DNA of 64,000 bases. It comes from Macrostomum lignano. Lineage: Eukaryota. A program made the translations under genes and the position numbers. Within the stretch, counting starts at the first letter, position 1; each line of letters begins with the position of its first letter. The notes beneath the pieces were generated by a model. It was not told where the DNA came from. It ran no database searches and was given only the letters and a program-made list of their open reading frames with translations. Shown one piece after another: positions 2,970-64,000 of this stretch. The stretch is from NCBI GenBank assembly GCA_002269645.1, contig NIVC01001264.1, positions 124,001 through 188,000 of the forward strand, in the 5' to 3' direction.

Positions 2970-3137
2970 GCGCAACCTTGGGATTCGCCCGGTCGTTTCT
3001 ATTGGCGGCACACGCATGTAAGTCGCTATTGAACGGAATCACGTGAACGGACGGACTCACGTGACTGCTCTCAGCCAATAGCGACTTACATGTGTGTGTT
3101 GCCAGTGGAAACGGCCGGGTGATTCCCAAGGTTGCGC
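2970..3137 (+). other. Long inverted repeat / RNA hairpin (62-bp arms, 44-nt loop) just 3' of the gephyrin stop
   Basis: Arms 2970-3031 and 3076-3137 pair without indels: 54 Watson-Crick pairs, 7 G-U and 1 U-U on the + strand. Confidence 0.9.
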
Positions 3138-3359
3138 ATGTATGTGATGTGACGACGTAGCTTCAATATAGACTGTAGCTTCATTATATTTATCTAATAA
3201 TTAGCCTCATTAGAATACACATTAGGTTTTAAATTTTCAATAGAATTCCTTCTTATACGATAATACATCGAAGATTAATTAATTTAAGCCAAATGATTTA
3301 CGTGATTGCGAGAATTTCATTGTAGGTCTGACTTTGAGATTCTACTAAAATCGCACTAT

Positions 3360-3510
3360 CCTAATACGTTGTAAAGATGTTCTTAACTTTGGTTGCGCGC
3401 GGATGATGTGGCCTGCCAGCTGGAGTCGCCGATGGTGCAAGGGGTCGCCGACCTTGAAGATGACGCTCAGCAGGCCAGCGTCTGCCGCGTAAACTTGCTC
3501 CCTGGAGCAC
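3360..3510 (-). mobile_element. Small non-LTR retrotransposon (LINE) remnant, post-RT C-terminal region
   Basis: Minus frame contains RRLQLAGHIIR, resembling the RRLxxAGHxxR motif at the end of RTE/CR1-like ORF2. Confidence 0.45.
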
Positions 3511-5480: not shown

Positions 5481-5824
5481 GAGTGTGCAATTCCTTACGG
5501 CCCTTCCACAGATAGCTACAGTAATTGGTACATGAGATGCCTCTCGTGCTGATTGAAATTATGGATACCTGGTATTTACAGTACACACGTCTTCATCATT
5601 CATCTGTTTGTTGCATTTGAATCGCGGCTTCTTTGAAATCAGGAAGTTTCTGTAGGTTGGTTTTAAAGTGGATTCGTGCACATCGTGGCGAAATTATTCT
5701 GCTATATACACTGCAGAATTTCCTTATTGCATTCTGACGTGGGTCGAGCTGCCGCATTTTTGACAACTAGAATTCCCAGACAGTTTCGTCTTCTGATTTA
5801 GGTGCAGGCTTCATAACAGTGTTA

Positions 5825-6047
5825 CTCTTAACAGTGTCAGAGAAAGTTCTTATCACACTATTTTGTGCCTCACATGCTGCTCTAACGCCGCAATAATCGA
5901 TTTTTCATGTTAAATTGGTCTGTCACTTGAAAAAACGTTTAAAATAATGACAAAAACAATTTAACATGAAAAATCGATTAATGCGTCGTTAGAGCAGCAT
6001 GTGAGGCACAAAATAATGATTAGGACTTTCTCTGACACTGTTAAGAG
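5825..6047. repeat. Inverted repeat (about 92-bp arms, 39-bp spacer); foldback/MITE-like
   Basis: 5825-5917 is the near-perfect reverse complement of 5957-6047 (ctcttaacagtgtcagagaaag ... ctttctctgacactgttaagag). Confidence 0.9.
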
Positions 6048-7106
6048 ACCCAATCACTGTTTTAATGTTTTTTAATTTCCTATCTCCGTAGTGTATTTTT
6101 CCGGTGAAACCTGCCTTTAAAACTATTTCTGAACAAAAAGCTTTATGAATATCGATAAAGCAATAAGAAAGGCACAGCATATCAAAAGATGAACACTGGA
6201 TCTGCCTTCTATCAAAAGCAATAACAATTTTTGTGCTGAAAAAATTAAAACCTATCTCTGTGGTGTATTTTTCGGCGAAAAGTTGCCTTCAAAACATTTA
6301 CCTTAGATTTCGAGTGTAGCGTCCAATATATATATTACTTGAGTATTCCTTGACTGTATGTACTGCCATTTAAATTTAAGCGATAATGAAAATCGAAAAA
6401 CACCAAATAAAATAATCATTTTTATGCTTTTGCAATGCTGAAACTTTATGTTTTGTAGATTTTTTGTTTTAAAAGGTCTTAAATTTTGAAGGAAAAGGTC
6501 TACATTTTTCACAAAGTTTAAATCTAAAATTTTCACATTAAAGACTTATTTTACTTTAGTTAGCTAAAATATTTCAACGCATTAAAAACTTTTGTTTTAC
6601 ATAGAAAAAACTCAACAAGAAAAATCACAACAATAAACTTTTTTAGGTAGCTAAAATCTAAAAAAATTATATTAAAAAGTTTTGTTTTACCTAGTACGTA
6701 GGTAAAATCTAAAGAAATCACAACATTATTTAAATGGTTTTGTTTTACATAGAAAAATCAAAGAATAACTCACAGCATTAGCTAATTAAAAAGTTTTATT
6801 TTATTTAGATAAAATCCACAATTATCATTTAAAGTTTTTTTTACTTCGTAACATCTAAAAGACTCACAACATAATTTTTTTTGTTATGATTTTGTTAAGT
6901 GCTCAAAAAATTGATTGTGGCTCTTAATTAAGTAAAACAGTTTAAACGGATCCGTTATTTTTGCTTGTGGAATGCTTGAAAAAAATGATTTGTAGTTTTG
7001 GTTCACAAAAGTTGCTTCAAATAATTTTGAGGGAGGGGTAGTGACTTCGCAAATCACAGTTGTTTATTCAACTTTTTTGAGGTTGAGAATTTAGAGCTGA
7101 ACAGAT

Positions 7107-9927: not shown

Positions 9928-18287
<8,360 letters not shown>

Positions 18288-36600: not shown

Positions 36601-37148
36601 TGACAGCATGAGATATCAGAGTGACAGCATGAGATATCAGAGTGACAGCATGAGATATCAGAGTGACAGCATGAGATATCATAGCGACAATATTAGATAT
36701 CAGAGTGACAGAGTGAGATATCAGAGTGACAATATTAGATATCAGAGTGACAGCATGAGATATCAGAGTGACAGTATTAGATATCAGAGTGACAGCATGA
36801 GATATCAGAGTGACAGTATGAGATATCAGAGTGGCAGCATGAGATATCAGAGTGACAGTAAAATGAACTACAGTACCAATGAGGCATAAGGAGTGCCGGC
36901 CTCACCTGCAGCTGACCTTCGGCAGGCCTATGCGGCCAAGGCTCCACAACGTCGTGCGTCACCTTGGCAACAACAATAGTAGCTCCCAGCCGAGCCGTGA
37001 CGCAGCCGGATTCGGTGTCGGCAAATCGACACCGAATCCGGCGAATGTCGGTCAAATTTCGACCATCGATTCGGCACTGATTGGCGATGCTATTGGCTAT
37101 GGCCTTGCGCTCGTTGGTGGACAGAAATAAACTGTTGTCTTGCCGCAT
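33640..37148 (-). CDS. EXOSC9: Exosome complex component RRP45, 449 aa; exons 37148-36906, 36179-35910, 35171-35049, 34353-33640
   Basis: RNase PH-like motifs NERKAI..RIDGR, RPAEG, LERCFKESRCLDLESLCIVPGERVFLIRV, NDGNVIDCA, YRRPDV and VAMSANREIC. Joined exons total 1350 nt, in frame. Confidence 0.95.
34385..34930. repeat. TGAATGTGAATGATTTGAAAGCTTTGG-type minisatellite
   Basis: Direct reading; EXOSC9 intron. Confidence 0.9.
35270..35840. repeat. GCGATTATTCTAAGAA-type minisatellite
   Basis: Direct reading; EXOSC9 intron. Confidence 0.9.
36340..36860. repeat. 21-bp minisatellite (GAGATATCAGAGTGACAGCAT)
   Basis: Period 21. Confidence 0.95.
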
Positions 37149-37259
37149 TGGCGCACTGGATCGCTGCAAACTGTTTTCAGCAAATAGTGTTGAGCCTGCA
37201 CACAATACAGACAATTAGGATATTTTAAATAGGTAAGCCGGAAAAGAGATGGAATAGGG

Positions 37260-38925
37260 GGGATGGAGAGAAGAGATGGGACAAAGGATGGGGAGAAGAG
37301 ATGGGACAAGAGGGGTTGGGGAGAAGAGATGGGACAAGAGGGAGTGGGGAGAAGAGATGGGACAAGAGGGGGTGGGGAGAAGAGATGGGACAAGAGGGGG
37401 TGGGGAGAAGAGATGGGACAAGAGGGGTTGGAGAGAAGAGATGGGACAAGAGGGAGTGGGGAGAAGAGATGGGACAAGAGGGGGTGGGGAGAAGAGATGG
37501 GACAAGAGGGGTTGGAGAGAAGAGATGGGACAAAAGGGGGTGGGGAGAAGAGAAGGGACAACAGGGGGTGGGGAGAAGAGATGGGACAACAGGGGGTGGG
37601 GAGAAGAGATGGGACAACAGGGGGTGGGGAGAAGAGATGGGACAACAGGGGGTGGGGAGAAGAGATGGGACAACAGGGGGTGGGGAGAAGAGATGGGACA
37701 ACAGGGGGTGGGGAGAAGAGATGGGACAAGAGGGGGTGGGGAGAAGAGATGGGACAAGAGGGGATGGGAAGAAGAGATGGGACAAGAGGGGTGGGGAGAA
37801 GAGATGGGACAAGAGGGGATGGGGAGAAGAGAAGGGACAAGAAGGGATGGGGAGAAGAGAAGGGATGGGGGATGGTGCGAAGAGATAGGATGGGTGGGGG
37901 GAGAAGAGATGGGACAAGAGGGGATGGGGAGAAGAGAAGGGACAAGAGGGGATGGGGAGAAGAGAAGGGACAAGAGAGGGTGGGGAGAAGAGATGGGACA
38001 ACAGGGGGTGGGGAGAAGAGATGGGACAAGAGGGGATGGGGAGAAGAGAAGGGACAACAGGGGGTGGGGAGAAGAGATGGGACAAGAGGGGGTGGGGAGA
38101 AGAGATGGGACAAGAGGGGATGGGGAGAAGAGAAGGGACAAGAGGGGATGGGGAGAAAAGAAGGGATGGGGGATGGTGCGAAGAGATAGGATGGGTGGGG
38201 GGAGAAGAGATGGGACAAGAGGGGGTGGGGAGAAGAGATGGGACAAGAGGGGGTGGGGAGAAGAGATGGGACAACAGGGGGTGGGGAGAAGAGATGGGAC
38301 AAGAGGGGGTGGGGAGAAGAGATGGGACAAGAGGGGGTGGGGAGAAGAGATGGGACAAGAGGGGATGGGAAGAAGAGATGGGACAAGAGGGGGTGGGGAG
38401 AAGAGATGGGACAAGAGGGGATGGGGAGAAGAGAAGGGATAAGAAGGGATGGGGAGAAGAGAAGGGATGGGGGATGGTGCGAAGAGATAGGATGGGTGGG
38501 GGGAGAAGAGATGGGACAAGAGGGGATGGGGAGAAGAGAAGGGACAAGAGGGGATGGGGAGAAGAGAAGGGACAAGAGAGGGTGGGGAGAAGAGATGGGA
38601 CAACAGGGGGTGGGGAGAAGAGATGGGACAAGAGGGGATGGGGAGAAGAGATGGGACAAGAGTGGATGGGGAGAAGAGAAGGGACAAGAGGGGATGGGGA
38701 GAAGAGAAGGGATGGGGGATGGTGCGAAGAGATAGGATGGGTGGGGGGAGAAGAGATGGGACAAGAGGGGGTGGGGAGAAGAGATGGGACAAGAGGGGAT
38801 GGGGAGAAGAGAAGGGACAAGAGGGGATGGGGAGAAGAGATGGGACAAGAGGGGATGGGGAGAAGAGAAGGGATGGGGGATGGTGCGAAGAGATAGGATG
38901 GGGTGGGGAGAAGAGATGGGATCGG
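37260..38925. repeat. G-rich minisatellite (GGGAGAAGAGATGGGACAAGAGGGGGT) with higher-order structure
   Basis: The interrupting unit GGATGGTGCGAAGAGATAGGATGG recurs five times. Confidence 0.95.
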
Positions 38926-39700
38926 GATGGGGAGATGGAAATGCATGGGAAATGGGAAGTGACGCCAGACGTCAAGCTAACTTGCTACTAAATTTCATCA
39001 GCCTGCAATCAAAACAGCAGCAGAGGAGTTTCTCGCAACTCGAATCGAATCAAACTAATTGTTATTACAATAAAGAATATATTATAACTTTACTTAATCA
39101 ATAACAATTAGCACTAGAAAAGTCACATGGTATAAGCAGAACCAGATGCTAACAAAAAAACGAAAATAATTAACGAATTGAGAGAGAAAGTTGCGAGCTG
39201 AGCACAACCATTACAAACAGACAACAAGGCCCAACTAAACATTACAGATGACAAAATATAGCACTATAGGCAAACACAGTTAGCGAGCCTCTATATACGC
39301 TGAATATAACTAAATAGGTATATAGGAGCCAAGTCTAGGGGGAATTGTTTAAACATTAATTTAAGCCAAAATTTCAAACTTCAAAACGGCACCTCAGGCC
39401 AAGAAGATACTCTATAAACGGCGAGATATTGCGGTACAAATAGCCTAAGATTTAATTTTAGGTGGTTTATTGTCTGCGACTCTTTTGAATTAGAATCGCA
39501 TTTTGCATTTTTACGCTCTTATAACAATTCTATCTAGTCTACCTGTGAGTTAGTAGACAGTTACGACTTTAGGACGACTTTTTTCGAGACACTTTTTACA
39601 ATTCTACCACTTTTAAAAATTGACCAACATCATTACTTGAAGTAGTGAAGCTCTTATTTATTTCAACTAACAATACTAGTTCCCATTGCCCTATCCAGCG

Positions 39701-42700
39701 TCAATACTTTTCATAGTTGCTATCGCCGACCCGTTCGCCGCTGCTGCCGTAGCCAAACTTGGCCAAATCTCGTTCGATCTGTTCCGCCCGACTCTCGCCG
39801 TTAGTCTCGCCGACTGTCGAGCCGGAACTGTTTTTGAATCGTTCGTAGCTGGCGTAGAACGCATCGGACATTGCGGCCGGGCCGGTCATGCTGACTCCTC
39901 CGCCAGTCTGCTCAGCCGAGGTGCCCAGGCCGCCGCCGCCACTGCCCCCACTGCCGCCGCTATAAAACGAAGTTGACGAAGTAGATCCCGACGACAAACT
40001 TGGCTGACCACTAGGCGGGTGAGTTGGCGCAGGACTAGATGGGCTTGAATCCACAGACTTGTAGATTGCTAAAGCCTGTGATAAAAATTCAGTTATGAAA
40101 TTTTCTGTCAATACTCAAAAGAGTCAAAAAATGCTTTAATGGGTTAAAAGAATCTCAGGGGTTTGGGGGACCAGTCGTAAAACTTTCTTATCTGAAAGGG
40201 CCAGCTAATAAATCCAGCTCATGGCTGCGGGCCAGATGAGAGTGGAAAGGAGATGAAATGGAAAATGAGGGATGAAAGAAGAGAGGGGCGAGAGAGAAGA
40301 TTAGAGGAAAGATGGAAGAGGGGAGGGGAGGGGAGAGAAGGGGAAAAGAGAGATGGGAGAGGAGGGGAGAGAAGAGAAGAGAGAGAAGGGGAGAAGAGGA
40401 GAGAGGGGAGAAGAGGACAGAGGGGATAGAAGATGGGAGAGAAGAGGGGATAGGAGAGGAGAGGGGAGACGGGAGAGGGGAGAGGAGGGGAGAGAAGAGG
40501 AGAGAGGGAAGAGGAGGGGAGAGACGAAAAGAGAAGAGGAGAGAGGGGAGAAGAGGAGAGAGGGGAGAGAAGATAGGAGAGAAGAGGGGAGAGGAGAGGA
40601 GAGGGGAGACGGGAGAGGGGAGAGGAGGGGAGAGAAGAGGAGAGGAGAGAGGGGAGAGGAGGGGAGAAGAGTAGAGAGGGGAGACAAGATTGGAGAGAAG
40701 AGGGGAGAGGAGAGGAGAGAAGAGGAGAGATGGGAGAGGAAGGGAGAGAAGAGAGGGGAGAGAAGGGGAGAAGAGGAGAGAGGGGGAAGAGGAGAGAGGG
40801 GAGACAAGATTGGAGAGAAGAGGGGAGAAGAGAGGAGAGAAGAGGGGAGAGGAGAGGAGAGAAGAGGAGAGATGGGAGAGGAAGGGAGAGAAGAGAGGGG
40901 AGAGAAGGGGAGAAGAGGAGAGAGGGGGAAGAGGAGAGAGGGGAGACAAGATTGGAGAGAAGAGGGGAGAAGAGAGGAGAGAAGAGGGGAGAGGAGAGGA
41001 GAGAAGAGGAGAGATGGGAGAGGAAGGGAGAGAAGAGAGGGGAGAGAAGGGGAGAAGAGGAGAGAGGGGGAAGAGGAGAGAGGGGAGACAAGATTGGAGA
41101 AAAGAGGGGAGAGGAGAGGAGAGAAGAGGAGAGATGGGAGAGGAAGGGAGAGAAGAGAGGGGAGAGATGGGGAGAAGAGGAGAGAGGGGAGAAGAGGAGA
41201 GAGGGGAGACATGATTGGAGAGAAGAGGGGAGAGGAGATTAGAGAAGAGGAGAGAGGGGAGAAGAGGGGAGAAGAGGAGAGAGGGGGAAGAGGAGAGAGG
41301 GGAGACAAGATTGGAGAGAAGAGGGGAGAGGAGAGGAGAGAAGAGGAGAGATGGGAGAGGAAGGGAGAGAAGAGAGGGGAGAGAAGGGGAGAAGAGGAGA
41401 GAGGGGGAAGAGGAGAGAGGGGAGACAAGATTGGAGAGAAGAGGGGAGAAGAGAGGAGAGAAGAGGGGAGAGGAGAGGAGAGAAGAGGAGAGATGGGAGA
41501 GGAAGGGAGAGAAGAGAGGGGAGAGAAGGGGAGAAGAGGAGAGAGGGGGAAGAGGAGAGAGGGGAGACAAGATTGGAGAAAAGAGGGGAGAGGAGAGGAG
41601 AGAAGAGGAGAGATGGGAGAGGAAGGGAGAGAAGAGAGGGGAGAGATGGGGAGAAGAGGAGAGAGGGGAGAAGAGGAGAGAGGGGAGACATGATTGGAGA
41701 GAAGAGGGGAGAGGAGATTAGAGAAGAGGAGAGAGGGGAGAAGAGGGGAGAAGAGGAGAGAGGGGGAAGAGGAGAGAGGGGAGACAAGATTGGAGAGAAG
41801 AGGGGAGAGGAGAGGAGAGAAGAGGAGAGATGGGAGAGGAAGGGAGAGAAGAGGAGAGAGGGGAGAAGAGGAGAGACGCAAGGAGAGATCGCACGCAAGC
41901 TGGCGAGGAGAGATAGGCCGAGGCGGGCACAACGCACGGGGCTAAAAAGGCCCAACAGACACCCACCCCCGCCCCAGGGGCGGCGCACCCACCCCCGGAC
42001 CAAGCACCCCCAAACACGGGCGACGACAAGCCCCCCCCCGGCCCCGCTAACAGCGATTGGCCAGCCAATCTACACTAATAAACAATGAAAAGCCCACCTG
42101 AGCAACCATGCTTGCAATATCACCAGACTGGGCCGGCAATAGCACAGTATTAGTAGACTTGGCCAATTTGCTAAACGCTTCAATGTATTTCTCAGCGATG
42201 GTCATGGACACAACGCTGGATCCGTTGGCCTGATTGAGCGAGTCGGCTACTGACCGGATCGCTTGAGCCCGGGCCTCGGCTAAGCGAATGATAGCTTCGC
42301 TCTCGCCCAGCGCTTTGTTCAGCACCTCGCGTTGAAATGCTTCGGAAGCCAAGATCTGGGCCTGCTTCTTGCCTTCGGCTACGTTGATATCGGAATTGCG
42401 AATGCCCTCGGACTCGAGGATGGCCGCCCGCTTGCGCCTGTCCGCCTCCACCTGAGCGGGTGAGAGCACAGATTCAACTGCTCGCGTGTTGATGCTCGTC
42501 CATCGGATCTCATCTCATCTCATCTCACCCATAGTATCCTTTCCCTTCTATCATATCATCCATAGTATCGTATCTTATCTCACCCTTAGTTTCTTATTCT
42601 ATCTCATTCCTCGTATCTTATCGCATCTCACCCTTTATTATCGAAGCTAAACTCATCTCATCACTAGTATTTTATCTCATCTAATCCCTAGTATCTTATC

Positions 42701-49194: not shown

Positions 49195-50738
49195 TTAAGC
49201 CTTCCAATCGAAATCCCATTCTTCATCTGGTATGCCAGCTAGTAGGGCTTCAACATCCACTTCATCATCATTCTGCGTCCGTTGCTGAGCCTTAGCTGAA
49301 TTGCTGGCTACATTCAGTCTACTAGAAGAAGAACCAGCAGCAGCAGAAGCGGAAGCAGCTGGCGACGCGACGCTAGCAGCGGATGGGCCAAAAAAATGAG
49401 CCAATTGCAGTTGCTCCTTTCGCTTCTTGATTTCTGTTCGCTTGTATCTGAAAATTATGCACAAACTCTGCATTGATTTGAGCAGCTTTCGGCCTGACTT
49501 TGAGTAATCTTTTGCGTCCTACCTCTTGGCCAGAGGCTCCTGCTGCTCACTATGATCGCCCTCGGTCTCAGCATCCGCAGCTGCCTGATGAGGAACTCCA
49601 TTCTCCGACTCAAACAGAGCCTTGTTAGTCTCATCTTCGTCAACCATAGCCTGATAGAAATCCGTAATGCAGGCCTGCTTATCGGCGCTCAGGTGCAAAT
49701 AGGCCGTCTCCGCGTCGCGAAATGTCTCGCGATTGAGGCCGGCCGAGCCCAGCACTGCCAGCTTGCGCTGCACCAGCGGCCACAGGTGATCGTCAGCTGT
49801 GCCCTGGTGAGCGGGGGTGAGGGCTGACTGACTGACTGACTGACTGACTGACTGACTGACTGACTGACTGACTGACTGACTGGCTGACTGACTGACTGAC
49901 TGACTGACTGACTGACTGACTGACTGACTGACTGACTGACTGACTGACTGACTGACTGACTGACTGACTGACTGACTGACTGACTGACTGACTGACTGAC
50001 TGACTGACTGACTGACTGACTGACTGACTGACTGACTGACTGACTGACTGACTGACTGACTGACTGACTGACTGATTGACTGATTGACTGACTGACTGAC
50101 TGACTGAGTTGATTGAGCATCTACTGAGTTGACTGAGAATGATCTGAGTATGGCTGATTGGTGAGTGAGAATAAGCAGGTATAACGCTCACCTGCGCCAC
50201 TAGGTAGTGCACACAGACGGAGTTCTGCTGCCCAATGCGGTAGGCCCGATCCTCGGCCTGCAGCAGGATGCCGGGATTCCAGAATAGCTCGCCGAACACC
50301 ACAAGAGAGGCGGCCGTCAGATTGACTCCAGTGCCAGCCGCCGTGATGCTTAGCAAAGCCACTCGAACGTTGGCCCGAGTCTGGAAAGCTTCGGCGAATG
50401 CGTGCCGCGCCTCCGGCTGGGTGCGACCGTCGATTCGAATTCTATCGACGCTTTTGTCGGCGAGCATTGAGTCCAGCTCGTCTAGGAATTCGGAGTGGTG
50501 CGCGAATACGAGAAATTTGCGGGTCTCTGACGCTTCGAGTAGGTCGAGGATGTACTGCTTCACGGCGGACACCTGCGGGGCCGACGCGGTGCACAAGGGG
50601 CATGGGATGAATAATAGTTCGTTTGTATAGATGAAAAGATCTCACTGTTGGTGCATTAGATTCCATGTATTGATAATTGTCTTTTAGGTGTATTTTGTAT
50701 TTTATGTCTGTCTGTCTGTCTGCGTGTCTGTCTATCTA

Positions 50739-50797
<59 letters not shown>

Positions 50798-50844
50798 TAG
50801 TGTCTGTCTGTCTGTCTGTCTGTCTTAGTGTCTGTCTGCCTTAG

Positions 50845-50889
<45 letters not shown>

Positions 50890-53800
50890 TTCTGTCTGTC
50901 TTAGTATCTCTAAAACAGCTCTATAGTGGTTAGTGCGAGAAACCAAAAGTATTGAGCTCTGAGCTCACTAGACGACTTTTATATTTTTGGTACAAGCGAA
51001 CGTAAGAATAATTGATGCATAAAAGCACAGGGGGTTTTACAAGAACGCACACACTAGTCACGCTCAATGAAGCATTGTCAGTCAATCGATAAAAATAAAA
51101 AAGCGAGTGTACTCAATGTACACCCGCTGAGTCACGCGATACGACAGTACCTGTCTGTCTGTCTGTCTATGTATCTATCTGACTGTTTTGGTGTCAAATT
51201 TACTGTCTGTTGGTCTATCTACATACTCTAGTGACAGCTTACTTTAAATTAACAGCCAATAGCGTACCTTGACCCGGGCGGTACCGTGAAAGTACTCCAA
51301 CAATAAGCCGCGCTTCTCAGCAGCCGACCGATTCTCATTAGCAGATTGTTCGACATTCTTAGCGAGACCGCTAAGTGATTCGCGTCGTTTCAGACTGGTG
51401 GGATCGAGCACCACCTGAAGGGAGTTCGAGTGAGCTGAAGACATTGGGCGATTCTCATGCTGAGATCTATGGGCGATTCTCATGCTGAGATCTATGGGAG
51501 ATTCTCGTGCTGAGATCTATTGAGCGATCCTCATGCTGAGATCTATGGGAGGTTCTCATGCTGAGATCTATAGGCGATTCTCATGCTGAGATCTATGGGC
51601 GATTCTCGTGCTAAGATCTATGGGCGATTTTCATGCTGAGATCTATTGGCGATTCTCATGCTGAAATCTATGGGAGATTCTCATGCATGCTGAGATCTAT
51701 AGGCGATCCTCGTGCTGAGATCTATGGGCGATTCTCGTGCTGAGATCTATGGGAGATTCTCGTGCTGAGATCTATAGGCGATTCTCGTGCTGAGATCTAT
51801 GGGAGATTCTCGTGCTGAGATCTATGGGCGATTCTCGTGCTGAGATCTATAGGCGATTCTCATGCTGAGATCTATGGGCGATTCTCGTGCTAAGATCTAT
51901 GGGCGATTTTCATGCTGAGATTTATTGGCGATTCTCATGCTGAAATCTATGGGAGATTCTCATGCATGCTGAGATCTATAGGCGATCCTCGTGCTGAGAT
52001 CTATGGGCGATTCTCGTGCTGAGATCTATGGGAGATTCTCGTGCTGAGATCTATGGGCGATTCTCGTGCTGAGATCTATGGGTGATTCTCATGCTGAGAT
52101 CTATAGGCGATTCTTAGAGGTATTGAAATAAGACAGACGCACCATCTGTCGCCTCTTAGCCGGCAGCTGGTCCAGCACGTCAGATTTCAATCGCCGAATC
52201 ATAAGCGAATCCTCCAGCAACAATTGCAGCTCCGGCATATTCGAACTACCCGAATAATCCGTGCCCCAGGCCCGTTGCTTTGGATCGCAATAGCGCTGAC
52301 CGAATTCGTGAAAACCGCCAGGGAATAATCTAGGCCTAATCATGGACATCTGAGTGTAGAGCTCGGCCGGCCTGGATAGAGCCGGAGTGCCGGACAACAG
52401 CAGAAGGCGCCTGGCATTTTTAGTTACACGAACGGCCGCTTTGGAACGAGCTGTTTTTGGATTCTTCAAGAAGTGACTCTCGTCAAATATGATAGTTGGA
52501 TAGGAGCGAGACGCCAGCTGATCTGCGCAGCGAGATAGTAGATCGTAGCTCACAATGGTTATGGGCACGTGGCAGCTTTGCGATGTCAGGGCTTTGCTGT
52601 TGTCTAGCACCTATAGTGAGTGTGTAAATTGTTGCAAAGACTCGATTACTTTATTTTCAACTGTAAGACACAAAAGCAAGCCTTAAAAGGCGTCAAACAA
52701 CTATCACAATTGAAAACAATCTAATACAATACTATTCAACAAGTTTCTAATCAATTTTTGGATCTTTGTCATAGGTTAGCACAAAAAACGCAAGAAGTCT
52801 TTGTCATTTCTTAGCACCCAAACGCAACAAGTCTTTGTCATTATTCAGCACCCAAACGCAACAAGTCTTTGTCACTATTTAGCACCCAAACGCAAGAAGT
52901 CTGTCATTATTTAGCACTTAAACGCAACAAGTCTTTGTCATTATTTAGCACCCAAACGCAACAAGTCTTTGTCACTGTTTAGCACCCAAACGCAAGAAGT
53001 CTTTGTCACTATTTAGCACCCAAACGCAAGAAGTCTTTGTCATTATTTAGCACTTAAACGCAACAAGTCTTTGTCATTATTTAGCACCCAAACGCAACAA
53101 GTCTTTGTCACTGTTTAGCACCCAAACGCAACAAGTCTTTGTCACTGTTTAGCACCCAAACGCAACAAGTCTTTGTCACTGTTTAGCACCCAAACGCAAC
53201 AAGTCTTTGTCAGTATTTAGCACCCAAACGCAAGAAGTCTTTGTCATTTCTTAGCACCCAAACGCAACAAGTCTTTGTCACTATTTAGCACCCTAAAGCA
53301 AGAAATCTTTGTCATTATTTAGCACTCAAACGCAACAAGTCTTTGTCACTACCCAAACACAAGAAGTCTTTGTCATTATTTAGCACTCAAACGCAACAAG
53401 TCTATGTCACTACCCAAACACAAGAAGTCTTTGTCATTATTTAGCACCCAAACGCAACAAGTCTTTATCATAGCACAACACCAAAATACTGTCTAACTTA
53501 CACTAGGCCTGCTCCGTGGGCCTCAGTGTAAAGTGTGTTAACCCCACACCTCCCCCTTCGCCCACCTCTCCTCCGCCGCGTGCCGGGGGTTCTTAAACCC
53601 AGTGTTTTCTGGCTTGGGCGTCTGCGTGCAAGTGCTCTGATTTTTTTATTTTTAATTTCTCTTGTTTTATTCTCCCCGGATTTATCGATCATTTTCGAAT
53701 TCGACGTATGCACGTTGTTTATTGCGCAAAATAAATGCAACATCCGAAGGGGTCGCCTTCCCCACCTCGTCGCTGCTTTGTGCTCGCTGCCATCCTGCCG

Positions 53801-56800
53801 CCTTTGCCTTTCTTTCGCTGCTTGTGGGGTTGCGGGTTAAAGCACGTCTTTGTCATAGCTTAGCATCAAAATACAGTTCAGGTCTTTGTCATAGCTTAGC
53901 ATCAAAATACAGTTCAGCTCTTTGTCATAGCTTAGCATCAAAATACAGTTCAGCTCTTTGTCATAGCTTAGCATCAAAATACAGTTCAGGGCTTTGTCAT
54001 AGCTTAGCATCAAAATACAGTTCAGGGCTTTGTCATAGCTTAGCATCAAAATACAACTGGTCTTTGTCATAGCTTAGCATCAAAATACAACTGGTCTTTG
54101 TCATAGCTTAGCATCAAAATACAACTGGTCTTTGTCATAGCTTAGCATCAAAATACAACAGGGCTTTGTCATAGCTTAGCATCGAAATACAACAGGGCTT
54201 TGTCATAGCTTAGCATCAAAATACAACTGGTCTTTGTCATAGCTTAGCATCAAAATACAACTAGTCTTTGTCATAGCTTAGCATCAAAATACAACTGGTC
54301 TTTGTCATAGCTTAGCATCAAAATACAACTGGTCTTTGTCATAGCTTAGCATCAAAATACAACTGGTCTTTGTCATAGCTTAGCATCAAAATACAACTGG
54401 TCTTTGTCATAGCTTAGCATCAAAATACAACTGGTCTTTGTCATAGCTTAGCATCAAAATACAACTGGTCTTTGTCATAGCTTAGCATCAAAATACAACT
54501 GGTCTTTGTCATAGCTTAGCATCAAAATACAACTGGTCTTTGTCATAGCTTAGCATCAAAATACAACTGGTATTTGTCATAGCTTAGCATCAAAATACAA
54601 CTGGTCTTTGTCATAGCTTAGCATCAAAATACAACTGGTCTTTGTCATTCTCACAAGAATATCCTCTTCAAGCAGGGCCTGGCCAGCCCATCGCAACACC
54701 TGACTACGCCAGGCGTAACGAACAGACGATGGCGCCACAATTAACGCAGGCCAATCGTTAGCCCGATAGTACAAAGCCACAGCAATAGCTTGCACAGTTT
54801 TTCCTAAGCCCATATCGTCGCCAATGAGAGCTCGGCCAGATTTGCTAATAACAAATTGCACTCCGCGAACTTGAAATGGCAGCAACGAGTTGGCCAAATC
54901 GCTGCCAATTACGCTGCCAAGTTGAGCTAAATCTGGTATGGCGGGCGATTGTGCCTTCGACTGCTGAGCCTATGTGTGCAATTGGAAATGGAAATTTTAT
55001 GTAGCTCATATAGTAAATAAATGCAGCTCTTGCTTAATTACTTTTTAAAGTATTTTAAATTAAACTAGCAATTTGGGGAGCCAAAAAATATACAGTACAA
55101 GTTTTTTAATAAACTACATGTAGTGTTTCTTTGCAATAACCTCAGCAATCTATTGTAAGCATTGACATCTTAGCAATTTCCCCCCCCCACAAGCCTTAAC
55201 ATATCAATCCCCCCTCCTTTCAAGAGATCTCAGCGATGACCACAATAAGCATTGAAATTTTTAAAATCTGTTACCCTTCTAACCCTAACCCTAACCTTAA
55301 AGCATTGACATTTCAGGAATTCTCCCCAAGAGTCATTATAGCATTACAGCATTATAGCGATTATAGCTTGAGTGTCTAGGAATTATGCTATTGTGCTGAA
55401 AAAGATTCTAGAAGGGGGGGGGTAGATTGGTAGAAGCTGCCAATTTTTACTAGGGTCGAGGTTTTGGAATGTCTGAGATGTCAAGGCTGAGAGGGGAATT
55501 GCTGAGATGTCAAGGCTGAGAGGGGAATTGCTGAGATGTCAAGGCTGAGAGGGGAATTGCTGAGATGTCAAGGCTGAGAGGAGAATTGCTGAGATGTCAA
55601 GGCTGAGGGGGGAATTGCTGAGATGTCAAGGCTGAGAGGGGAATTGCTGAGATGTCAAGGCTGAGAGGGGAATTGCTGAGATGTCAAGGCTGAGGGGGAA
55701 TTGCTGAGATGTCGAGGCTGACAGGGGGGAATTGCTGAGATGTCGAGGCTGACAGGGGGGAATTGCTGAGATGTCGAGGCTGACAGGGGGGATTCCTGAG
55801 ATGTCGAGGCTGACAGGGGGAATTGCTGAGATGTCGAGGCTGACAGGGGGGAATTGCTGAGATCTCGAGGCTGACAGGGGGGAATTGCTGAGATGTCAAG
55901 ACTGACGGGGGAATTGCTGAGATGTCGAGGCTGACAGGGGGGAATTGCTGAGATGTCAAGGCTGAGAGGGGAATTGCTGAGATGTCAAGGCTGAGAGGGG
56001 AATTGCTGAGATGTCAAGGCTGAGGGGGGAATTGCTGAGATGTCAAGGCTGAGAGGGGAATTGCTGAGATGTCAAGGCTGAGAGGGGAATTGCTGAGATG
56101 TCAAGGCTGAGGGGGGAATTGCTGAGATGTCGAGGCTGACAGGGGGGGGATTCCTGAGATGTCGAGGCTGACAGGGGGGGATTCCTGAGATGTCGAGGCT
56201 GACAGGGGGGGATTCCTGAGATGTCGAGGCTGACAGGGGGGAATTGCTGAGATGTCGAGGCTGACAGGGGGGAATTGCTGAGATGTCGAGGCTGACAGGG
56301 GGGAATTGCTGAGATGTCAAGACTGACGGGGGATTGCTGAGATGTCGAGGCTGACAGGGGGGGGGATTCCTGAGATGTCGAGGCTGACATGGGGGAATTG
56401 CTGAGATGTCGAGGCTGACAGGGGGGGGGATTGCTGAGATGTCAAGACTGACAGGGGGAATTGCTGAGATGTCAAGACTGACGGGGGGATTGCTGAGATG
56501 TCGAGGCTGACAGGGGGGGATTGCTGAGATGTCAAGACTGACAGGGGGAATTGCTGAGATGTCAAGACTGACGGGGGGATTGCTGAGACGTCGAGGCTGA
56601 CAGGGGGGAATTGCTGAGATGTCGAGGCTGACAGGGGGGGGATTGCTGAGATGTCAAGACTGACAGGGGGAATTGCTGAGATGTCAAGACTGACAGGGGG
56701 AATTGCTGAGATGTGAAGACTGAGAAAACAGAAGCTATATGTAAAGAAAAAGTTATTCCATCCTTTGTTGCCTACTAACAGGGGGTGCTGATTGTTAAGT

Positions 56801-57236
56801 CTTGAAGCTAAAAATTAGTCTCCAATAGACTTATTTCAGATAGAAAATGTTACAAGTGTGTAGCACTTACAGCGCTTGCAGAGGATTGAGGCGGATTATG
56901 CTGAGGCTGAGCTGGCCTATACCTTCTAGCCAGTATGCTAGCTATGACTGGCGGCAATGGTTCGATTTTTAATTCGCGTTTCAAACTGGGATCCGCATCC
57001 CGCAGCAGGCGCATGAAGGTGTCATAGTCGCGAGCGTGAAATGACCACCTACGCGTGGCTGGGTCGTAATTCCTGGATGGCACAGACTTGAACAATTGCA
57101 ATAGGCCCATGTGGTAGCCAATCTTCACTTCGAATTGGTTTTCATTTAATAGCACTACTTTGCCTTCTAGCTTGGGAGTTGGCTGTTTCTGCTGGCATTG
57201 ATTTCCTGGCTGGCCGCGGCCTCTCTGAGGCTGCAT
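49195..57236 (-). CDS. SMARCAL1: SMARCAL1 annealing helicase / fork remodeller, about 736 aa, single HARP domain; exons 57236-56871, 54969-54655, 52610-52143, 51414-51268, 50572-50192, 49803-49523, 49447-49195
   Basis: HARP ([27 protein letters not shown]); SNF2 motifs [82 protein letters not shown]. Total 2211 nt, in frame. Additional upstream exons cannot be excluded. Confidence 0.95.
49823..50105. repeat. (CTGA)n microsatellite
   Basis: Direct reading. Confidence 0.97.
50705..50905. repeat. (TCTG)n microsatellite
   Basis: Direct reading. Confidence 0.95.
51445..52110. repeat. 25-bp minisatellite (GCTGAGATCTATGGGCGATTCTCGT/AT)
   Basis: Period 25. Confidence 0.95.
52780..53470. repeat. 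34-bp minisatellite A (TCTTTGTCACTGTTTAGCACCCAAACGCAACAAG)
   Basis: Period 34. Confidence 0.93.
53845..54648. repeat. 34-bp minisatellite B (TCTTTGTCATAGCTTAGCATCAAAATACAACTGG)
   Basis: Period 34; highly homogeneous. Confidence 0.95.
55478..56722. repeat. 29-30-bp minisatellite (GCTGAGATGTCAAGGCTGAGAGGGGAATT)
   Basis: Period 29 with a variable G-run. Confidence 0.95.
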
Positions 57237-57469
57237 AGTCAAGCTTCTAACTGCTTAACTAGAGTTTAATAATTAATCACATATGTAATAGTACATTTTT
57301 TCTGGTGACAGGCTGCAAAGAAAATAATGATTTAAAACTGCTAGAGCTAAAATTTTGCTTCTTTATAATCAAATAGAAGCTTGAAAGTTATGCTAAAACT
57401 TTAATAATTATAATAATAATAAATGTAGTTGATTACCCCTGCACTAATGGGCAAATGATTGCTACACAT

Positions 57470-58447: not shown

Positions 58448-58771
58448 AGATAGAGAACCTAGAGCATGACTGTGGGTCAGATAGAGAACCTAGAGCACGA
58501 CTGTGGGTCAGATAGAGAACCTAGAGCACGACTGTGGGTCAGATAGAGAACCTAGAGCATGACTGTAGGTCAGATAGAGAACCTAGAGCATGACTGTGGG
58601 TCAGATAGAGAACCTAGAGCACAACTGTGGGCCAGATAGAGAACCTAGAGCATGACTGTGGGTCAGATAGAGAACCTAGAGCACGACTGTAGGCCAGATA
58701 GAGAACCTAGAGCATGACTGTGGGTCAGATAGAGAACCTAGAGCACGACTGTGGGTCAGATAGAGAACCTA
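58448..58771. repeat. 31-bp minisatellite (TGGGTCAGATAGAGAACCTAGAGCACGACTG), truncated by the CACTA element
   Basis: Period 31; the last unit stops at GAACCTA, directly before CACTGTAAA. Confidence 0.93.
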
Positions 58772-59288
58772 CACTGTAAATCTTATGGGTCCGGATAAGG
58801 TCCGAATTGCATAATGCGGACCTTCATGCCTGAAGGCGGACCTTCATGTCTGAAGGTCCAATTTTTTTGGTCAGAGAAAACGAATGAAATTTTTTCAAGT
58901 GCCCTCAAATGATATTTTTTTAAGCACACGCGAGATTTTATAGAGAAAATCGGACTGGAAATAAATTTAGGTTTTATACCACCGTATTTTTTGCCGCATA
59001 AAAACACAAATAAAATTATCCGTCAAATGTAATTGCATCAATCGAAAGCTCTAAATGCCTTAAATTAAAGGAATTATATATTGTATTCCTTTTAACAGGT
59101 ACAAGCGCATTTCTAACACAGATCAAAAATATGTTGGGAACTTTTGTTTCACTCTACTAACTTCGAACATTTAGATTGTTGCGTGCAATTCGTTCTGATC
59201 AAACCTAAAAATTAGTGCTTTTTAAACGTTTTTACGCGTTGTCCATTCCACAACGACGAATTTAGTAGGCTTATCCACTGTCCAGGAT

Positions 59289-61835
59289 ATGTTAAATGGA
59301 GATGAAAATGTAATTTCAAAACTATTTCAATGTAGTATATGTCTTCATACACACAAGGATTTATTTAAGCTTATAAGTCATATAAAACTATACCATTCTT
59401 TTGGGAATAGCAATTTTTTATGTCCAGTTAGGGGATGTTACCATATTAGTGTTACAATTGAAGGATTACAAGCACATGCCTATCGTATGCACAAAAACAG
59501 TGTTGTTGATAATTTTTCCCAAGACCAAGTTCTACAGCCAAATTGTGTTCATAATAACCCTACTCTAGACTTATTAGGAAACCCTTTAGAAAATGAATTG
59601 CAAGCTGTGCCTATAGATATAGCCATATTATCTACTATTTGTAACCAAGTTGAAAATGAAAAAAAAGACCCTGAATTTGAAATGTCTAGTGATTTTTTAT
59701 GTGAAAATACAAGAAAACATCTTGCTGAAAATTTTGTTTACTTTTATCTAAAGTCTAGACATTTCTTTTTAATTCCTAAAAGCAAATCTAATCAATTATG
59801 TGAACTTGTTAAGGAAATAGTTTGCTGATGACTATTTTTTGTTATTTGAGCAATTTTTAAAAGAAGAATGTCCTTCAATAGTTAACAGCTATAATTCTTA
59901 TAAAAATAAATTAAATTTGCAAGAAATGATTGACCTTTCATTAGAGCATCTATTAAGTAATAAAAAAATATTTGAAATTTTACAAAACAAGTTTAATTTT
60001 GTTGAGCCCATTGAAATCATAGATGAAGAATCAAAATTAAAAATTCTATATATTCCAATAAAAGAAACACTTAGTTCTATTATAAAAAATGAGACATTGC
60101 TTAAGTATATTATTACAAATTCTTATTTAAATGCAACCAACAAAGAAAATTTTTTTTTCAAGTCTACTTATTTTGAAGAACATATTAGTCCATTGTTAAC
60201 AAATAAGAATGGTATATTCATAAAACTTTATTCAGATGAAATTGAAATATGTAATCCTATTGGGTCTGCCAAAACAAAACATAAATTATGTGTAGTATAC
60301 TTTACTATTCTTAATTTCCCTGAATATCTTAGTTCATCTTCAGACTTATATTTTCTTTTAACAGTATTTAATGATTCAAATGTTAAAAAGAAAGGTTTAC
60401 AGTTTTGTTTATTTCCATTAATTAGAGAGCTGAATGAGCTTTACTTTGAAGAATTTCAAATAAGTAATTTGATAAAAATGCCTGTTATTGCTGCTTTCAT
60501 GACTGGGGATAATTTATCAATACATAGAATGTTAGGTATGCAAACTTGGTTTTCAAGTGGTTATATTTGTAGATTTTGTTTTATAGGTTATAAACAGCTT
60601 TGTAGCATTAGATTAGAAGAATTAAGTACATTATTCCTATTTGAATATCGAGATAATTCATCATATATTGAAGATTTTAAATCCTTAAGTAATGGTTTAA
60701 TTTCACCATCTGTGTTTAGAAGTGTAGCATATATTAACTTTCAATATTTTTCCCCCCTGATATAATGCATGATGTGTTTGAAGGGTTTTCTCATGTTGTT
60801 ATATGTATTATTCTATTAAGTATTATTCAAAATCATAATATTAGTATAGACTATATAAACAAACAACTAAATTTGATTAAAGAAATCAGTATTCCTACAA
60901 TAAATAAATATCACTTACAAAATTATCATCTACCATGTACTTCTAATCAAATAATTGTTATTCTACAATACTTTGGACTTTTATTTGGACATTTGTTTGA
61001 GTTGGATGATGATATTTGGATATTATTTAATTGTCACAGGCAGTTTCTTGACATAATTTTGTCCCCATATGATAGTAGCATAAACTTAGAATATTTTCAA
61101 TCTCTTATTTCTGGCCAATTAGAATTAATATATAGAAACACGGGCTTCAATCCTAAATATAAATGTAAATTGCATTATATATGTCACTATCCTGAATTTT
61201 ATCATTATTATAGTGGTCTTAAATACTTATGGTGTATGCGAGGTGAAGCTCATCATCAATTGCTTAAGAATATAAACAGGCATGCAAGAAATTTCAAAAA
61301 TCCTGCCTATACATGTGCAAAACAATATCAAATTCAAAAAGCACTTATCATTAAGCACTATGAACCAGGTACAATTAAGAGCCATAATATAAATCCTATT
61401 AGCTTAAATATGCTATTGACAATAGATGAACAAACTGAGTTATGCAACAACATGAATTTAGATACAGACTCAATTATTGGCACTATTTGTCTTTCTACTA
61501 ATGAACTAAAATATCAGGGGTTTGTATATCGGACTCCAACATTAAATTACCGTTATTGTTTGCCAATTTTAGAACCAACTGGAATTGCTTTAGCATTAAT
61601 TAGCCATATTATTCAACTTTCCAACAAGTGGATAATTATTTGTAAAAAAGTGAATGCTAAATTTTCTTGTCATTATAGCAGTTTTATATGCACTGTGAAT
61701 AATGACCATTTAGTATTTATTGAACCTACTCAGCACTTTTTTCATCAGCCAATTCCATTTTTAATGTATCAAGGGAAACTTTTTCTTTCTTTAAAATATT
61801 ATCCAATGCTACATTGCCAAAACATTGATCAATAA
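59289..61835 (+). pseudogene. EnSpm/CMC-type transposase with N-terminal C2H2 zinc fingers, split into three ORFs by two frameshifts
   Basis: CSIC..HIKLYH and CPVRGC..HAYRMH; LYSDEIEICNPIGSAKTKHK, GDNLSIH, CRFC, (PPDI)MHDVFEG, KLHYICHY, LWCMRGEAHH. Frame changes occur near 59820 and in the T5C6 run at 60747-60757. Confidence 0.85.
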
Positions 61836-62129: not shown

Positions 62130-62683
62130 AGTATTGAAGAGTGAAGATTGTTCAGAAAAAAGCAACAAAAAAACAAAAGCATCATAAAAACACTAAACAT
62201 TTTGTTGTCACAGTCATTACTTATGGCTGCAAGGTATGGGGTCCACTGGCCAGGCAATCAAAAATTAAGGATCTGGATAATATTCAATTGAAATTCTATA
62301 AGTCTCTCCTTAAATTCTTAATCTACCAGAGCATACATACAAGCAATAAAGTCATACTCAATGAACTCAACATTCTTCCTATTTCTGAAATCATTAAGAA
62401 AAGGTACCTCCTTTTCTGGTTAAAACTTATTTAAAGCTAACTCTACTACCACTAGTCTCTTTAACAACAATGACAATCCAATTGATCCTTGGAAGAAAGC
62501 CATCTCACAGCAACTTAAAGGCATTGATCTAATGCAAAAACTTCTACTGTTTAAATTGTATTGTCCATTATTGACAACTTTTGTTAACACTAAGTTATTC
62601 ATATCTAATTAAATACACTCTATTAACATAACGGGCACTACTTGCCCAAGCCAATTAACTACTACTACTACTACTACTACTAC
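62130..62683 (+). mobile_element. 5'-truncated LINE fragment (post-RT C-terminus) with (CTA)n tail
   Basis: VITYGCKVW..LDNIQLKFYKSLL..TSNKVILNELNILPI, followed by in-frame stops; (ACT)n at 62658-62683. Confidence 0.7.
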
Positions 62684-62814
62684 ATTAAGTCAAGCCAAGG
62701 ACAAAAGCCGAAAAATCATAATGAACAAGAATTCCTTGGCTTTATAAATTCATTTTATCTGTGTCTTACCAGATGTATTCTGATTGAGGTTGTGCACATC
62801 ATACCTCATTTCAG

Positions 62815-64000
62815 CTTCGAATCTGCAACGGCTCAGAGGAGCGCAAGAAGCTCCTTCCAGCTTCTGGCCTGACCTTGGCGGACCTTTGCATCAAAGGTTG
62901 TTTAAAATTGGACATTGCAGATGTTGAAAATGTTCGCATTGTCACTTCTGACGGTTTCGAAATCGACGACGATGATTTAATATCGGAGGTGGCAAAGGAA
63001 TGTAGAACTGTGTACTTCCTTCTTTCTGGAGAGTTGCTTCCAAGCTGCGGTGCATGCCCTGTAGAACCTTCAACTACACCAAAGCAGCAAAGCGAAATAC
63101 GCAATGTCGAGATTGCCACAACACCGAGTCGAGGCACACAGGCTCTGAGTCCAAATCCAGCTGTAGCAGCTACGGCTGCAACTACACTTCCATGGCCCGA
63201 AGTGTACTCGCTTCCACGAATGGACGATCTCGCCAACGCCCTTCGTGATCTACGAATGCACCCCGAAAAGGGTTCCGATTTAAAAATGAATGCGACGTTT
63301 GTCAACAAGTTCCTTAAATTCATCGTCGATCACATCTGTTTGAACTATCTGTCGCCAAATGAACCATACCTGTCATCTAGCCAGATAACAGATGTGTGCA
63401 CTTCCATAGTAACTTCGTATCCTGGACTGAAGGACACCTCATTAAGTGGGAGCTCAAGCTTTTGGCGCCAAAAGCTTATTCGGCGTTTCAAAGAGCTCCG
63501 GTTCGTTGGCGACTTTGTCGACAAGAGCAGCCCAACGGTTCAGGAGATGCAACGGAAGCATGGTCGACTTGGTCATCGGCGTATAATTCTACCAAATGCT
63601 GCTGCAGCTGCTGCAGGCCCAAGTGCGGTTACTGTGAGCCAAAGGCATAAACGGCAGTACAAGGAAGTTGAAGGCCAGGAAGATGATGACGACAATGAAA
63701 TTATAGCTTCACGTGCTAAAAGAGCCAACAAGCAGCGTATCAACGACGACGAAGATCTGATCGAAGAAGAAGGCGATGATGATAGTGATGCAGACGATGC
63801 TGGCAGTGCAATGGCGAAGAGCGTTGACTTCGGCGAGTTCGATACCGATGTACCACCGTCACACGAAGCTCGTCGAACGAGATTGAACGAGACTCATCAT
63901 GACTCTTCAATATCAGACGTTCTCAACGAAATGCAGGCTCTGTTTCCGATTCGAATATTGCGGTGCCAAGATTTGACGGTTAGTGACGAAATTGCCTTAT
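62815..64000 (+). CDS. Partial gene (>395 codons, open to the window edge): CIDE-N-like N-terminal domain, central helical domain and acidic tract; probable accessory gene of the CACTA element
   Basis: Hand translation after acceptor CATTTCAG (62814) shows no stop up to 64000: LRICNGSEERKKLLPASGLTLADLCIKGCLKLDIADVENVRIVTSDGFEIDDDDLISEV...; absent from the ORF track, probably because it runs off the edge. Confidence 0.8.

Follow-up and report, generated by a model that had tools for sequence, protein, structure and literature searches.

Near the right-hand edge of a 64,000-nt stretch of the Macrostomum lignano genome (contig NIVC01001264.1, positions 124,001 to 188,000; this whole stretch is called the window here), a transposase gene is followed on the same strand by a gene whose product begins with a CIDE-N domain. 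We found that this open reading frame (ORF) is the downstream gene of a 6.6-kb, recently active DNA transposon of the CACTA/CMC superfamily, the right end of which is expected ~1.37 kb past base 64000. The frame (62815-64000, plus strand, frame 1) has 395 stop-free codons up to the window end, a run with a chance probability of ~(61/64)^395, or ~6e-9, and translation shows the other two frames to be stop-rich. It becomes open at 62788, right after a stop, and has no in-frame upstream ATG; its absence from the ORF list is due solely to the fact that it runs past the window end. A preliminary description of this DNA had noted the frame of more than 395 codons missing from the ORF track, its place about 1 kb downstream of a transposase on the same strand, a long Asp/Glu tract, and the contrast between an intact ORF and a frameshifted transposase. 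Three-frame translation and the measured spacing (980 bp) agree with it, the tract contains 21 D+E vs 10 K+R in the window copy, and the transposase of this copy is indeed split into three ORFs. The encoded protein, termed the accessory protein below, has 572 aa as judged from sibling copies, the first 395 of which are in the window. Its sequence marks are an N-terminal LRIC...RKKL...DGFEIDDDD, a middle part with YLSSSQITDVC...FWRQKLIRRFKELR, and the Asp/Glu tract, and its closest database proteins are hypothetical proteins of M. lignano, e.g., PAA47353.1 (assembly GCA_002269645.1).

Ends, copies and genes of the transposon

Six sibling loci (L001 and L003-L007), chosen as encoding proteins at least 99% identical, were fetched and compared with the window. 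The seven copies share 99.3-99.6% DNA identity within one block of ~6.6 kb, which starts with CACTGTAAATCTTATGGGTCCGG and finishes with CGGACCTTTAGGAATTACAGTG, and the flanks outside this block are unrelated. All six complete siblings have the same dinucleotide on both sides of the block (TA, TG, TA, TG, TA, and CT). In the window, homology to L001 begins within ~8 bp of position 58772 (99.3% over 5261 bp), where a 29-mer, CACTGTAAATCTTATGGGTCCGGATAAGG, is found that is present in all six siblings. The right end reads ...GGAATTACAGTG in the siblings, which corrects the ...TTTACAGTG of the preliminary description. The CIDE-N ORF ends ~840 bp short of the right end and is therefore internal to the element (Table 1).

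Terminal inverted repeats (TIRs) of the form CACTGTAA ... TTACAGTG, with a CACT(A/G)-type start, are common to the window family and two others. One of these is represented by L011 and L012, which are 99.97% identical, have TG duplications, and carry both ORFs intact; the other by L010, a complete element of 6068 bp with 14-bp TIRs and a TA duplication. A 2-bp target-site duplication flanks 9/9 complete copies from the three families. The full element of the window family contains 15 copies of the hexamer CGGACC/GGTCCG, against ~1 expected by chance over its entire length. Of these, 14 are no more than 90 bp away from the left end or 215 bp from the right end. L011 and L010, which represent diverged families, show the same end-clustering, so that across all three the hexamer occurs 14-19 times near the ends and once or twice in the ~6-kb interior. 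The CACT... TIR, the short target duplication, and the subterminal repeat arrays match the CACTA/EnSpm (CMC) superfamily, and the element is assigned on this basis.

The ORF lies inside the TIRs and downstream of the transposase in every complete copy, as expected of the second gene of a two-gene CACTA element, which is what the preliminary description had taken it for. That description had also raised the alternative of a captured or domesticated host gene, and the frameshifted transposase beside an intact ORF in the window would suit a domesticated single-copy gene next to a dead transposon. Such a gene would lie outside the TIRs, but the ORF is within them in six complete copies of the window family, in L010, in L011, and in L012; there are at least seven near-identical copies at unrelated sites; and the transposase is nearly intact or intact in other copies. 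Domestication is hardly credible as an explanation of this gene, and we reject the status of captured or domesticated host gene for the window copy and the other complete copies.

The transposase gene encodes C2H2-type fingers at the N-terminus, followed by a DDE core of probable CACTA/Plavaka type. It is intact in other elements (812 aa in L011/L012, 797 aa in L010, and 801 aa in L008) and broken in the window copy, which compared with the siblings lacks 8 bp at one site and 1 bp of a T run at another. No sampled copy of the window family has a transposase gene free of frameshifts, yet the 1-bp changes fall in A8, T9, and T6 runs and are possible assembly errors, in contrast to the 8-bp, 7-bp, and 2-bp indels, which do not fall in such runs. 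In L005 and L007, the difference amounts to a single base within a T9 run, possibly an assembly error, and an annotated 691-aa protein of the window family spans both breaks of the window transposase. The element's own transposase scores 16.4 or 14.1 bits against Pfam Transposase_21 (cutoff 28.6) or gives no match; relatives with 21-30% identity reach 26.5 and 24.7 bits against Plavaka (cutoff 26.3) and 23 bits against Transposase_21, with weak matches to DUF4218. Ten transposase sequences have D284, D375, CRxC, PPDxMHD, and E623 invariant (L011 numbering).

The 980-bp spacer between the genes includes a microsatellite and a fragment that resembles the C-terminal tail of the reverse transcriptase of a long interspersed nuclear element (LINE). 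The corresponding spacer ORF matches the equivalent part of a LINE ORF in L002 weakly by BLASTP (E = 0.014) and has no Pfam match, and the fragment is carried by all seven copies of the window family. Two of the siblings have additional features: in L004, the transposase gene is interrupted within its 5' portion by nested insertions (~2.9 and ~0.9 kb; ~2877-6770), and the L001 copy sits among Maverick/Polinton-like genes (L001 1-5900 and 12700-19400), which by eye from the translations encode a protein-primed DNA polymerase, an integrase, a cysteine protease, a packaging ATPase, and capsid-like ORFs.

Domains of the accessory protein

The N-terminal 75 aa of the accessory protein are a CIDE-N domain, as the preliminary description had proposed. 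Elsewhere, CIDE-N is known as a module for docking between proteins, in cell-death DNase proteins and in proteins of lipid droplets. Pfam PF02017 matches residues 2-61 of the window ORF with E = 1.4e-4 and 22.3 bits, and the full-length sibling with 23.2 bits (gathering cutoff 23.5). Relatives with 29-52% identity score 35.7 (P0002), 42.7 (P0018), 31.9 (P0019), 32.8 (P0020), and 32.8 bits (P0022), and because these homologues are above the cutoff, the window copy is counted as a member of the CIDE-N family. A profile built from eight family members and searched against PDB sequences retrieved ICAD (1.6e-7), DREP2 (1.9e-6), DFF45 (4.9e-6), and CIDE-A (1.7e-5), followed by lower matches to CIDE-3, DREP3, CIDE-B, CAD, and DREP4; the first 12 of the 13 matches listed are all CIDE-N chains. 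Only the profile succeeded in this search, as a single-sequence phmmer search of the ORF against PDB sequences returned nothing. An AlphaFold2 model of the 572-aa protein, computed from a seven-sequence alignment, has the order strand-strand-helix-strand-helix-strand in aa 1-70, with a block-mean predicted local distance difference test score (pLDDT) of 75-90. Against the PDB, Foldseek places the model closest to the CIDE domain of DREP2 (4d2k; TM 0.69, root mean square deviation 2.6 Å, 24% identity), with ubiquitin-like domains next, so the predicted fold is CIDE-N/ubiquitin-like. That the E-values of these matches are weak (0.13) is due to the use of the entire 572-aa model as query. The two outcomes that the preliminary description had named as refuting it, an N-terminus of another fold and a single-copy host gene outside the TIRs, are both contradicted. 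One M. lignano gene model carries the automatic UniProt label 'CIDE-N domain-containing protein'.

The HMMER alignments place K11/K12, K27, and K31 on R22/K23, R36, and K40 of DREP2, and DGFEIDDDD on the acidic EDGTIVDDDDY of ICAD, with D51-D54 on its DDDD; K31 and D51 are invariant across the accessory-protein family. By these alignments, both the basic and the acidic interface patch of CIDE domains are predicted to be present. Basic and acidic patches at these positions mediate CIDE-CIDE dimers and filaments (PMC6292858). Possession of both is the pattern of self-assembling CIDE domains, and DFF45 has the acidic patch only. Neither the DFF40 nuclease nor DFF-C or CIDE-C domains were detected in full-length members by Pfam at E up to 0.1-1; only CIDE-N matched.

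A linker of low complexity leads from the CIDE-N domain to a basic helical domain; the acidic tract comes next, and a C-terminal domain of 237 aa completes the protein. The middle domain (block-mean pLDDT mostly 71-88 over aa 131-220) and its tail contain the invariant residues W127, P128, Y131, L133, N164, Y185, W217, and R229. The domain itself is weakly basic, the tail has a net charge of +4 to +9, and together they reach +6 in the window family and +8 to +12 in most relatives, and the protein is basic nowhere else. For the middle domain, neither Pfam nor a Foldseek comparison of the whole 572-aa model with the PDB gave a relative. The C-terminal domain is modeled with high confidence (pLDDT 95.1, predicted template modeling score 0.91), and Foldseek found no match for it in the PDB (best E = 1.9, TM <0.27) or in BFVD, a viral database. 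Besides CIDE-N, no Pfam domain family recurs among the members. A DUF6128 match in the window copy (17.3 bits) is absent from the relatives and from a distant downstream gene in L014 and was taken as chance; a literature search returned no mention of DUF6128.

The likeness to SAMD3 that the preliminary description had seen in the middle region did not hold up: Pfam detected no SAM domain, and when the 572-aa protein was searched exhaustively with phmmer against 1.84 billion representatives, only 15 proteins came back, all of them members of the family or fragments thereof. They comprise the four M. lignano subfamilies and sequences from JGI and Logan assemblies. A profile search of a word-indexed database of 5.8 billion sequences added no new members and no SAMD3 link, and neither did a literature search; this negative applies at the sensitivity of sequence-level searches.

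Table 1. Features of the transposon within the window (positions are those of the window; aa, residues of the accessory protein).
Feature	Position	Strand	Basis or remarks
Left target-site duplication copy (presumed), TA	58770..58771	.	paired dinucleotides in siblings; right copy lies beyond the window
Left TIR, CACTGTAAAT	58772..58781	+	8 bp exactly complementary to right end ...TTACAGTG
Left subterminal repeats, hexamer GGTCCG/CGGACC	58788..58860	.	copies at 58788, 58799, 58817, and 58837; fifth, at 58855, degenerate here
Transposase gene (N-terminal C2H2 fingers, DDE core of probable CACTA/Plavaka type)	59289..61835	+	three ORFs: 59289-59828, 59839-60765, 60765-61835
Spacer passenger, LINE reverse transcriptase C-terminal-tail-like fragment	62141..62434	+	ORF, weak BLASTP match; followed by (TAC)n run, ~62657-62684
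Splice acceptor tttcag, probably for spliced-leader trans-splicing	62809..62814	+	directly before codon 1
CIDE-N domain, aa 1-75	62815..63039	+	Pfam, family profile vs PDB, AlphaFold2 model with Foldseek
Linker, aa 76-124		+	disordered, low complexity (AlphaFold2)
Helical middle domain (aa 125-228) and basic tail (aa 229-262)	63187..63600	+	conservation, pLDDT, charge
Acidic tract, disordered, aa 263-335	63601..63819	+	net charge -7 to -17 in all members; pLDDT <50
C-terminal domain, first 60 of 237 residues	63820..64000	+	full domain (aa 336-572) from sibling L001, 11006-11716

Conservation and expression of the gene pair

The pairing of the two genes was followed in 14 loci, namely, the window, L001-L007, L011-L013, and L008, L009, and L010, the last three of which are contigs from other samples. 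In all 14 fetchable loci, which include four M. lignano families, a homologous transposase of ~800 aa lies directly upstream on the same strand, which answers in the affirmative whether copies always pair the two genes, a check proposed in the preliminary description. Among five closer lineages, the proportion of nonsynonymous differences (pN) is 0.33-0.42 and that of synonymous differences (pS) 0.75-0.81, the random level; as synonymous sites are saturated between families, it can be stated that pN is well below pS, which is not equivalent to a dN/dS ratio. Within families, the two to eight differences per copy do not suffice for dN/dS, and neutrality is to be expected of them once a copy has inserted. 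None of the six lineages compared has a stop codon in the 480-572 codons. Because pN is below the saturated pS and stops are absent, the protein has been kept by selection over the lifetime of the element lineages: it is under purifying selection, and the gene pair is kept together across lineages that are synonymously saturated.

This long-term constraint argues against a domesticated host gene and also against a passive passenger, i.e., a piece of a host gene captured in the style of Pack-MULEs or CACTA elements and without function for the transposon. CACTA elements are known as gene capturers, a LINE fragment is likewise carried in this element, and the G+C content at third codon positions (GC3) of the accessory gene is closer to that of the host than is the GC3 of the AT-rich transposase gene. 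However, all copies examined have the ORF intact, its start-codon position is conserved, and it persists, with pN about half of pS, across a divergence at synonymous saturation that spans four families of M. lignano and three contigs of foreign origin. Moreover, no stand-alone host version was found among the 1.84 billion proteins searched. We regard a passenger gene as quite improbable.

The two genes differ in composition. In the M. lignano families and L010, GC3 is 0.18-0.26 in the transposase gene vs 0.44-0.59 in the accessory gene of the same element, and overall GC is 0.27-0.33 vs 0.47-0.54 (window, L011, L002, L010, and L005). In L008 and L009, from AT-rich hosts, both genes are AT-rich and there is no GC3 contrast. 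Since synonymous sites are saturated between families, the GC3 difference must be actively maintained, and gene-specific selection on expression is a possible source of it.

Two more distant loci were considered. In L014 (ENA ERZ24986310 ctg37935l), a distant Plavaka-type element is followed by a multi-exon gene at 11567-14240 that matches the middle region of the accessory protein weakly but in collinear order (SWPLVYQLP...) and has no detected CIDE-N. This hints that the helical core may be the older accessory gene, to which CIDE-N was added in one clade. L015, a relative of the transposase from Ixodes, has no trace of an accessory gene.

Directly before codon 1 of the accessory gene is a splice acceptor, and the junction, cag followed by (C/T)TTCGAATCTGC, is common to the window family, L002, L013, and L010. 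Upstream of it, the open frame is ATG-free in the window family, L002, and L013; in-frame ATGs occur in L010. The M. lignano spliced leader is CGGTCTCTTACTGCGAAGACTCAATTTATTGCATG, which ends in ...TTGCATG (PMC8629364). Leader and acceptor together read ATG CTT CGA ATC, or M-L-R-I, in frame, and trans-splicing is predicted to join ...TTGCATG to CTTCGAATC between positions 62814 and 62815. The in-frame ATG would come from the spliced leader, so an upstream cis exon, as expected in the preliminary description, is probably not needed. The terminal AUG of the schistosome leader has reportedly been established as an initiator. A genomic ATG is found exactly at the spot of leader donation in L011 and L012 (9998-10000) and in L003. 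In the latter, a copy with ~99.5% identity, four of the eight bases before the ORF differ (9993-10000, aattcATG vs catttcAG), so that the acceptor is swapped for an ATG.

Annotated M. lignano proteins of the family begin at, or a few residues from, LRI(C/T). Two unrelated long translations, P0014 (2381 aa) and P0033 (2034 aa), meet the accessory protein at or next to the LRIC residue, and only the accessory-protein part of P0014 matches the window or L001-L007. As true long proteins both were discarded, since they look like chimeric or read-through models, and they were used solely as evidence of a junction at the LRIC acceptor or immediately beside it. In M. lignano, trans-splicing resolves operons to which ~15% of the genes are assigned, with a spacing threshold, adjusted for repeats, of 1 kb (PMC8629364). 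The accessory mRNA may thus be trans-spliced, possibly from a primary transcript that spans both genes. In the NCBI names of P0036, P0008, and P0005, the transposase (Mlig000438g6) and the CIDE-N proteins (Mlig000438g7 and g11) have one cluster number, which may mean that both genes were assembled in one transcript cluster.

These shared names, the location of the genes on the same strand at a distance of 0.1-1.4 kb, and the acceptor directly before the CIDE-N ORF would also fit a single protein whose two halves are brought together by cis-splicing. Yet the transposase ORF is terminated by a stop in all intact copies, the CIDE-N ORF starts with its own ATG in L011, L012, L003, and L008, and the annotated proteins begin at LRI(C/T), which leaves such a fusion very improbable.

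The rest of the window contains an ordinary host gene for a SMARCAL1-like protein on the minus strand (49793-57242; HARP, SNF2, and Helicase_C domains in Pfam), and the transposon lies ~1.5 kb upstream of its first HARP exon. Short tandem repeats in the introns and flanks of this gene read as long artificial ORFs (SVSQ at 49.7-50.1 kb and another at 55.7-56.6 kb). Purine-rich minisatellites at 36302-41876, comprising 21-bp units (36302-36858), 28-bp units (37240-38873), and a GA-rich array (40.3-41.9 kb), cause the extreme GC and AT skew of the composition profile.

A putative end-pairing protein and related systems

In the CACTA element En/Spm of maize, TnpD is the transposase, and the ends are paired by TnpA, which binds to their subterminal repeats. 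We favor, at slightly better than even probability, an explanation in which the flatworm transposon is a two-gene CACTA element with a TnpA-like accessory protein that self-associates through CIDE-N on the element ends and is mostly started from a spliced leader. The accessory protein would be the functional counterpart of TnpA and would bind the ends, with their CGGACC arrays, through its basic helical part; alternatively, the zinc-finger transposase would recruit it there. Head-to-tail self-association of CIDE-N would then pair or coat the two ends, thereby assembling or regulating the transposition complex. Spliced-leader trans-splicing would form the mRNA in the majority of the M. lignano families, with the terminal AUG of the leader as start codon and possibly a two-gene primary transcript.

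Several points weigh against this explanation. DNA binding, oligomerization, and a role in transposition are predictions from the domain content of the accessory protein, and the C2H2 fingers of the transposase itself could explain the recognition of the subterminal repeats. No member matches Pfam Transposase_24, the model consulted for similarity to TnpA, and the CIDE-N score of the window copy is 1.2 bits below the Pfam cutoff. Trans-splicing and co-transcription are deduced from the sequence and the annotated protein starts. The GC3 contrast of ~0.2 vs ~0.5 could mean that the two genes have different origins.

Instead of serving transposon architecture, the CIDE-N domain could serve host manipulation, by binding host CIDE-N proteins (homologues of DFF40/CAD and DFF45/ICAD) and damping or redirecting apoptotic DNA fragmentation upon transposition breaks. 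CIDE-N domains hetero-dimerize as readily as they homo-oligomerize (PMC6292858), the best PDB match of the family profile is the CIDE-N domain of ICAD/DFF45, and exactly such a role at the host DFF complex was proposed for the small CIDE_N ORFs of betabaculoviruses (PMC5245865). We consider this reading unlikely, as it presupposes homologues of DFF40 and DFF45 in M. lignano, the ~500 further conserved residues would be superfluous for a simple decoy, and the accessory protein has both charge patches, like self-assembling CIDE domains and in contrast to DFF45. Less likely again is that the protein docks on a host CAD/ICAD-type DNase complex and thus suppresses the death of stem or germ cells during a jump or borrows the nuclease. 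If it did, it would be the first transposon-borne modulator of the DNA-fragmentation pathway, and the question would arise whether CIDE-N moved repeatedly between host cell-death genes and mobile elements.

The TnpA-like, end-pairing explanation draws on likenesses to En/Spm: CACT... termini, short target duplications, subterminal repeats clustered at both ends, and a transposase followed by a non-catalytic second protein whose production depends on splicing. Unlike En/Spm, the flatworm element has a 2-bp and not a 3-bp duplication, its second protein is probably made by spliced-leader trans-splicing and not by alternative cis-splicing, and this protein has no detectable similarity to TnpA and begins with CIDE-N, so that the analogy is positional and functional only. 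Plavaka elements are described from fungi. Relatives of the flatworm transposase reach or approach the Pfam models of Plavaka and Transposase_21 (tnp2), and the D, D, CxxC, DxMH, and E motifs are kept; the element's own transposase, however, is below both cutoffs and belongs to an animal clade. With DFF45/ICAD, DFF40/CAD, Drosophila DREP1-4, and CIDE-A/B/C, the accessory protein shares the N-terminal domain (by Pfam, profile matches in the PDB, and predicted fold) with both patches present, whereas the rest of the protein is unrelated to them and the gene is transposon-borne and multi-copy.

Similarly, SmTRC1 of Schistosoma mansoni is a flatworm element of the CACTA superfamily with 2-bp duplications and several transcripts, including short ones for non-transposase proteins of unknown fold, and a second, non-transposase protein is made from it (PMC1636069). 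In contrast to the M. lignano element, its TIR core is reported as CCC, and its proteins PrA and PrB are reported to be similar to nothing, with no CIDE-N reported (PMC1636069). Betabaculovirus CIDE_N ORFs (MyunGV#8 ORF38 and homologues) are likewise CIDE-N domains borne by a genetic parasite, but they are stand-alone proteins of insect viruses, mostly of 91-111 aa and in one case of 185 aa, whereas the flatworm protein is a 572-aa multidomain protein (PMC5245865). In Hydra genomes, CIDE-N is over-represented together with transposase domains (PMC7642931).

A full-text literature search, which did not extend to Repbase, turned up no account of a transposon with a CIDE-N domain; viral reports exist. 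The contexts of CIDE-N, i.e., DFF, Drep, and CIDE proteins and a few baculovirus ORFs, are thereby widened to a DNA transposon. Two-gene CACTA transposons are textbook knowledge in plants, and the new part is the type of accessory protein within this known plan; to our knowledge, the accessory proteins of animal CACTA elements are essentially uncharacterized. A recognizable oligomerization module gives a concrete, testable model of how the ends could be paired, and the 237-aa C-terminal domain combines a confident model with the lack of a counterpart in the PDB or BFVD. The use of a leader AUG as start codon, possibly in an operon-like transcript, would be an unusual expression route for the second gene of a transposon. 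With copies that are 99.3-99.97% identical and one family with both ORFs intact, the element family looks recently active. M. lignano is a flatworm with transgenesis and RNA interference, and in so tractable a host the element is directly testable and might serve as a tool.

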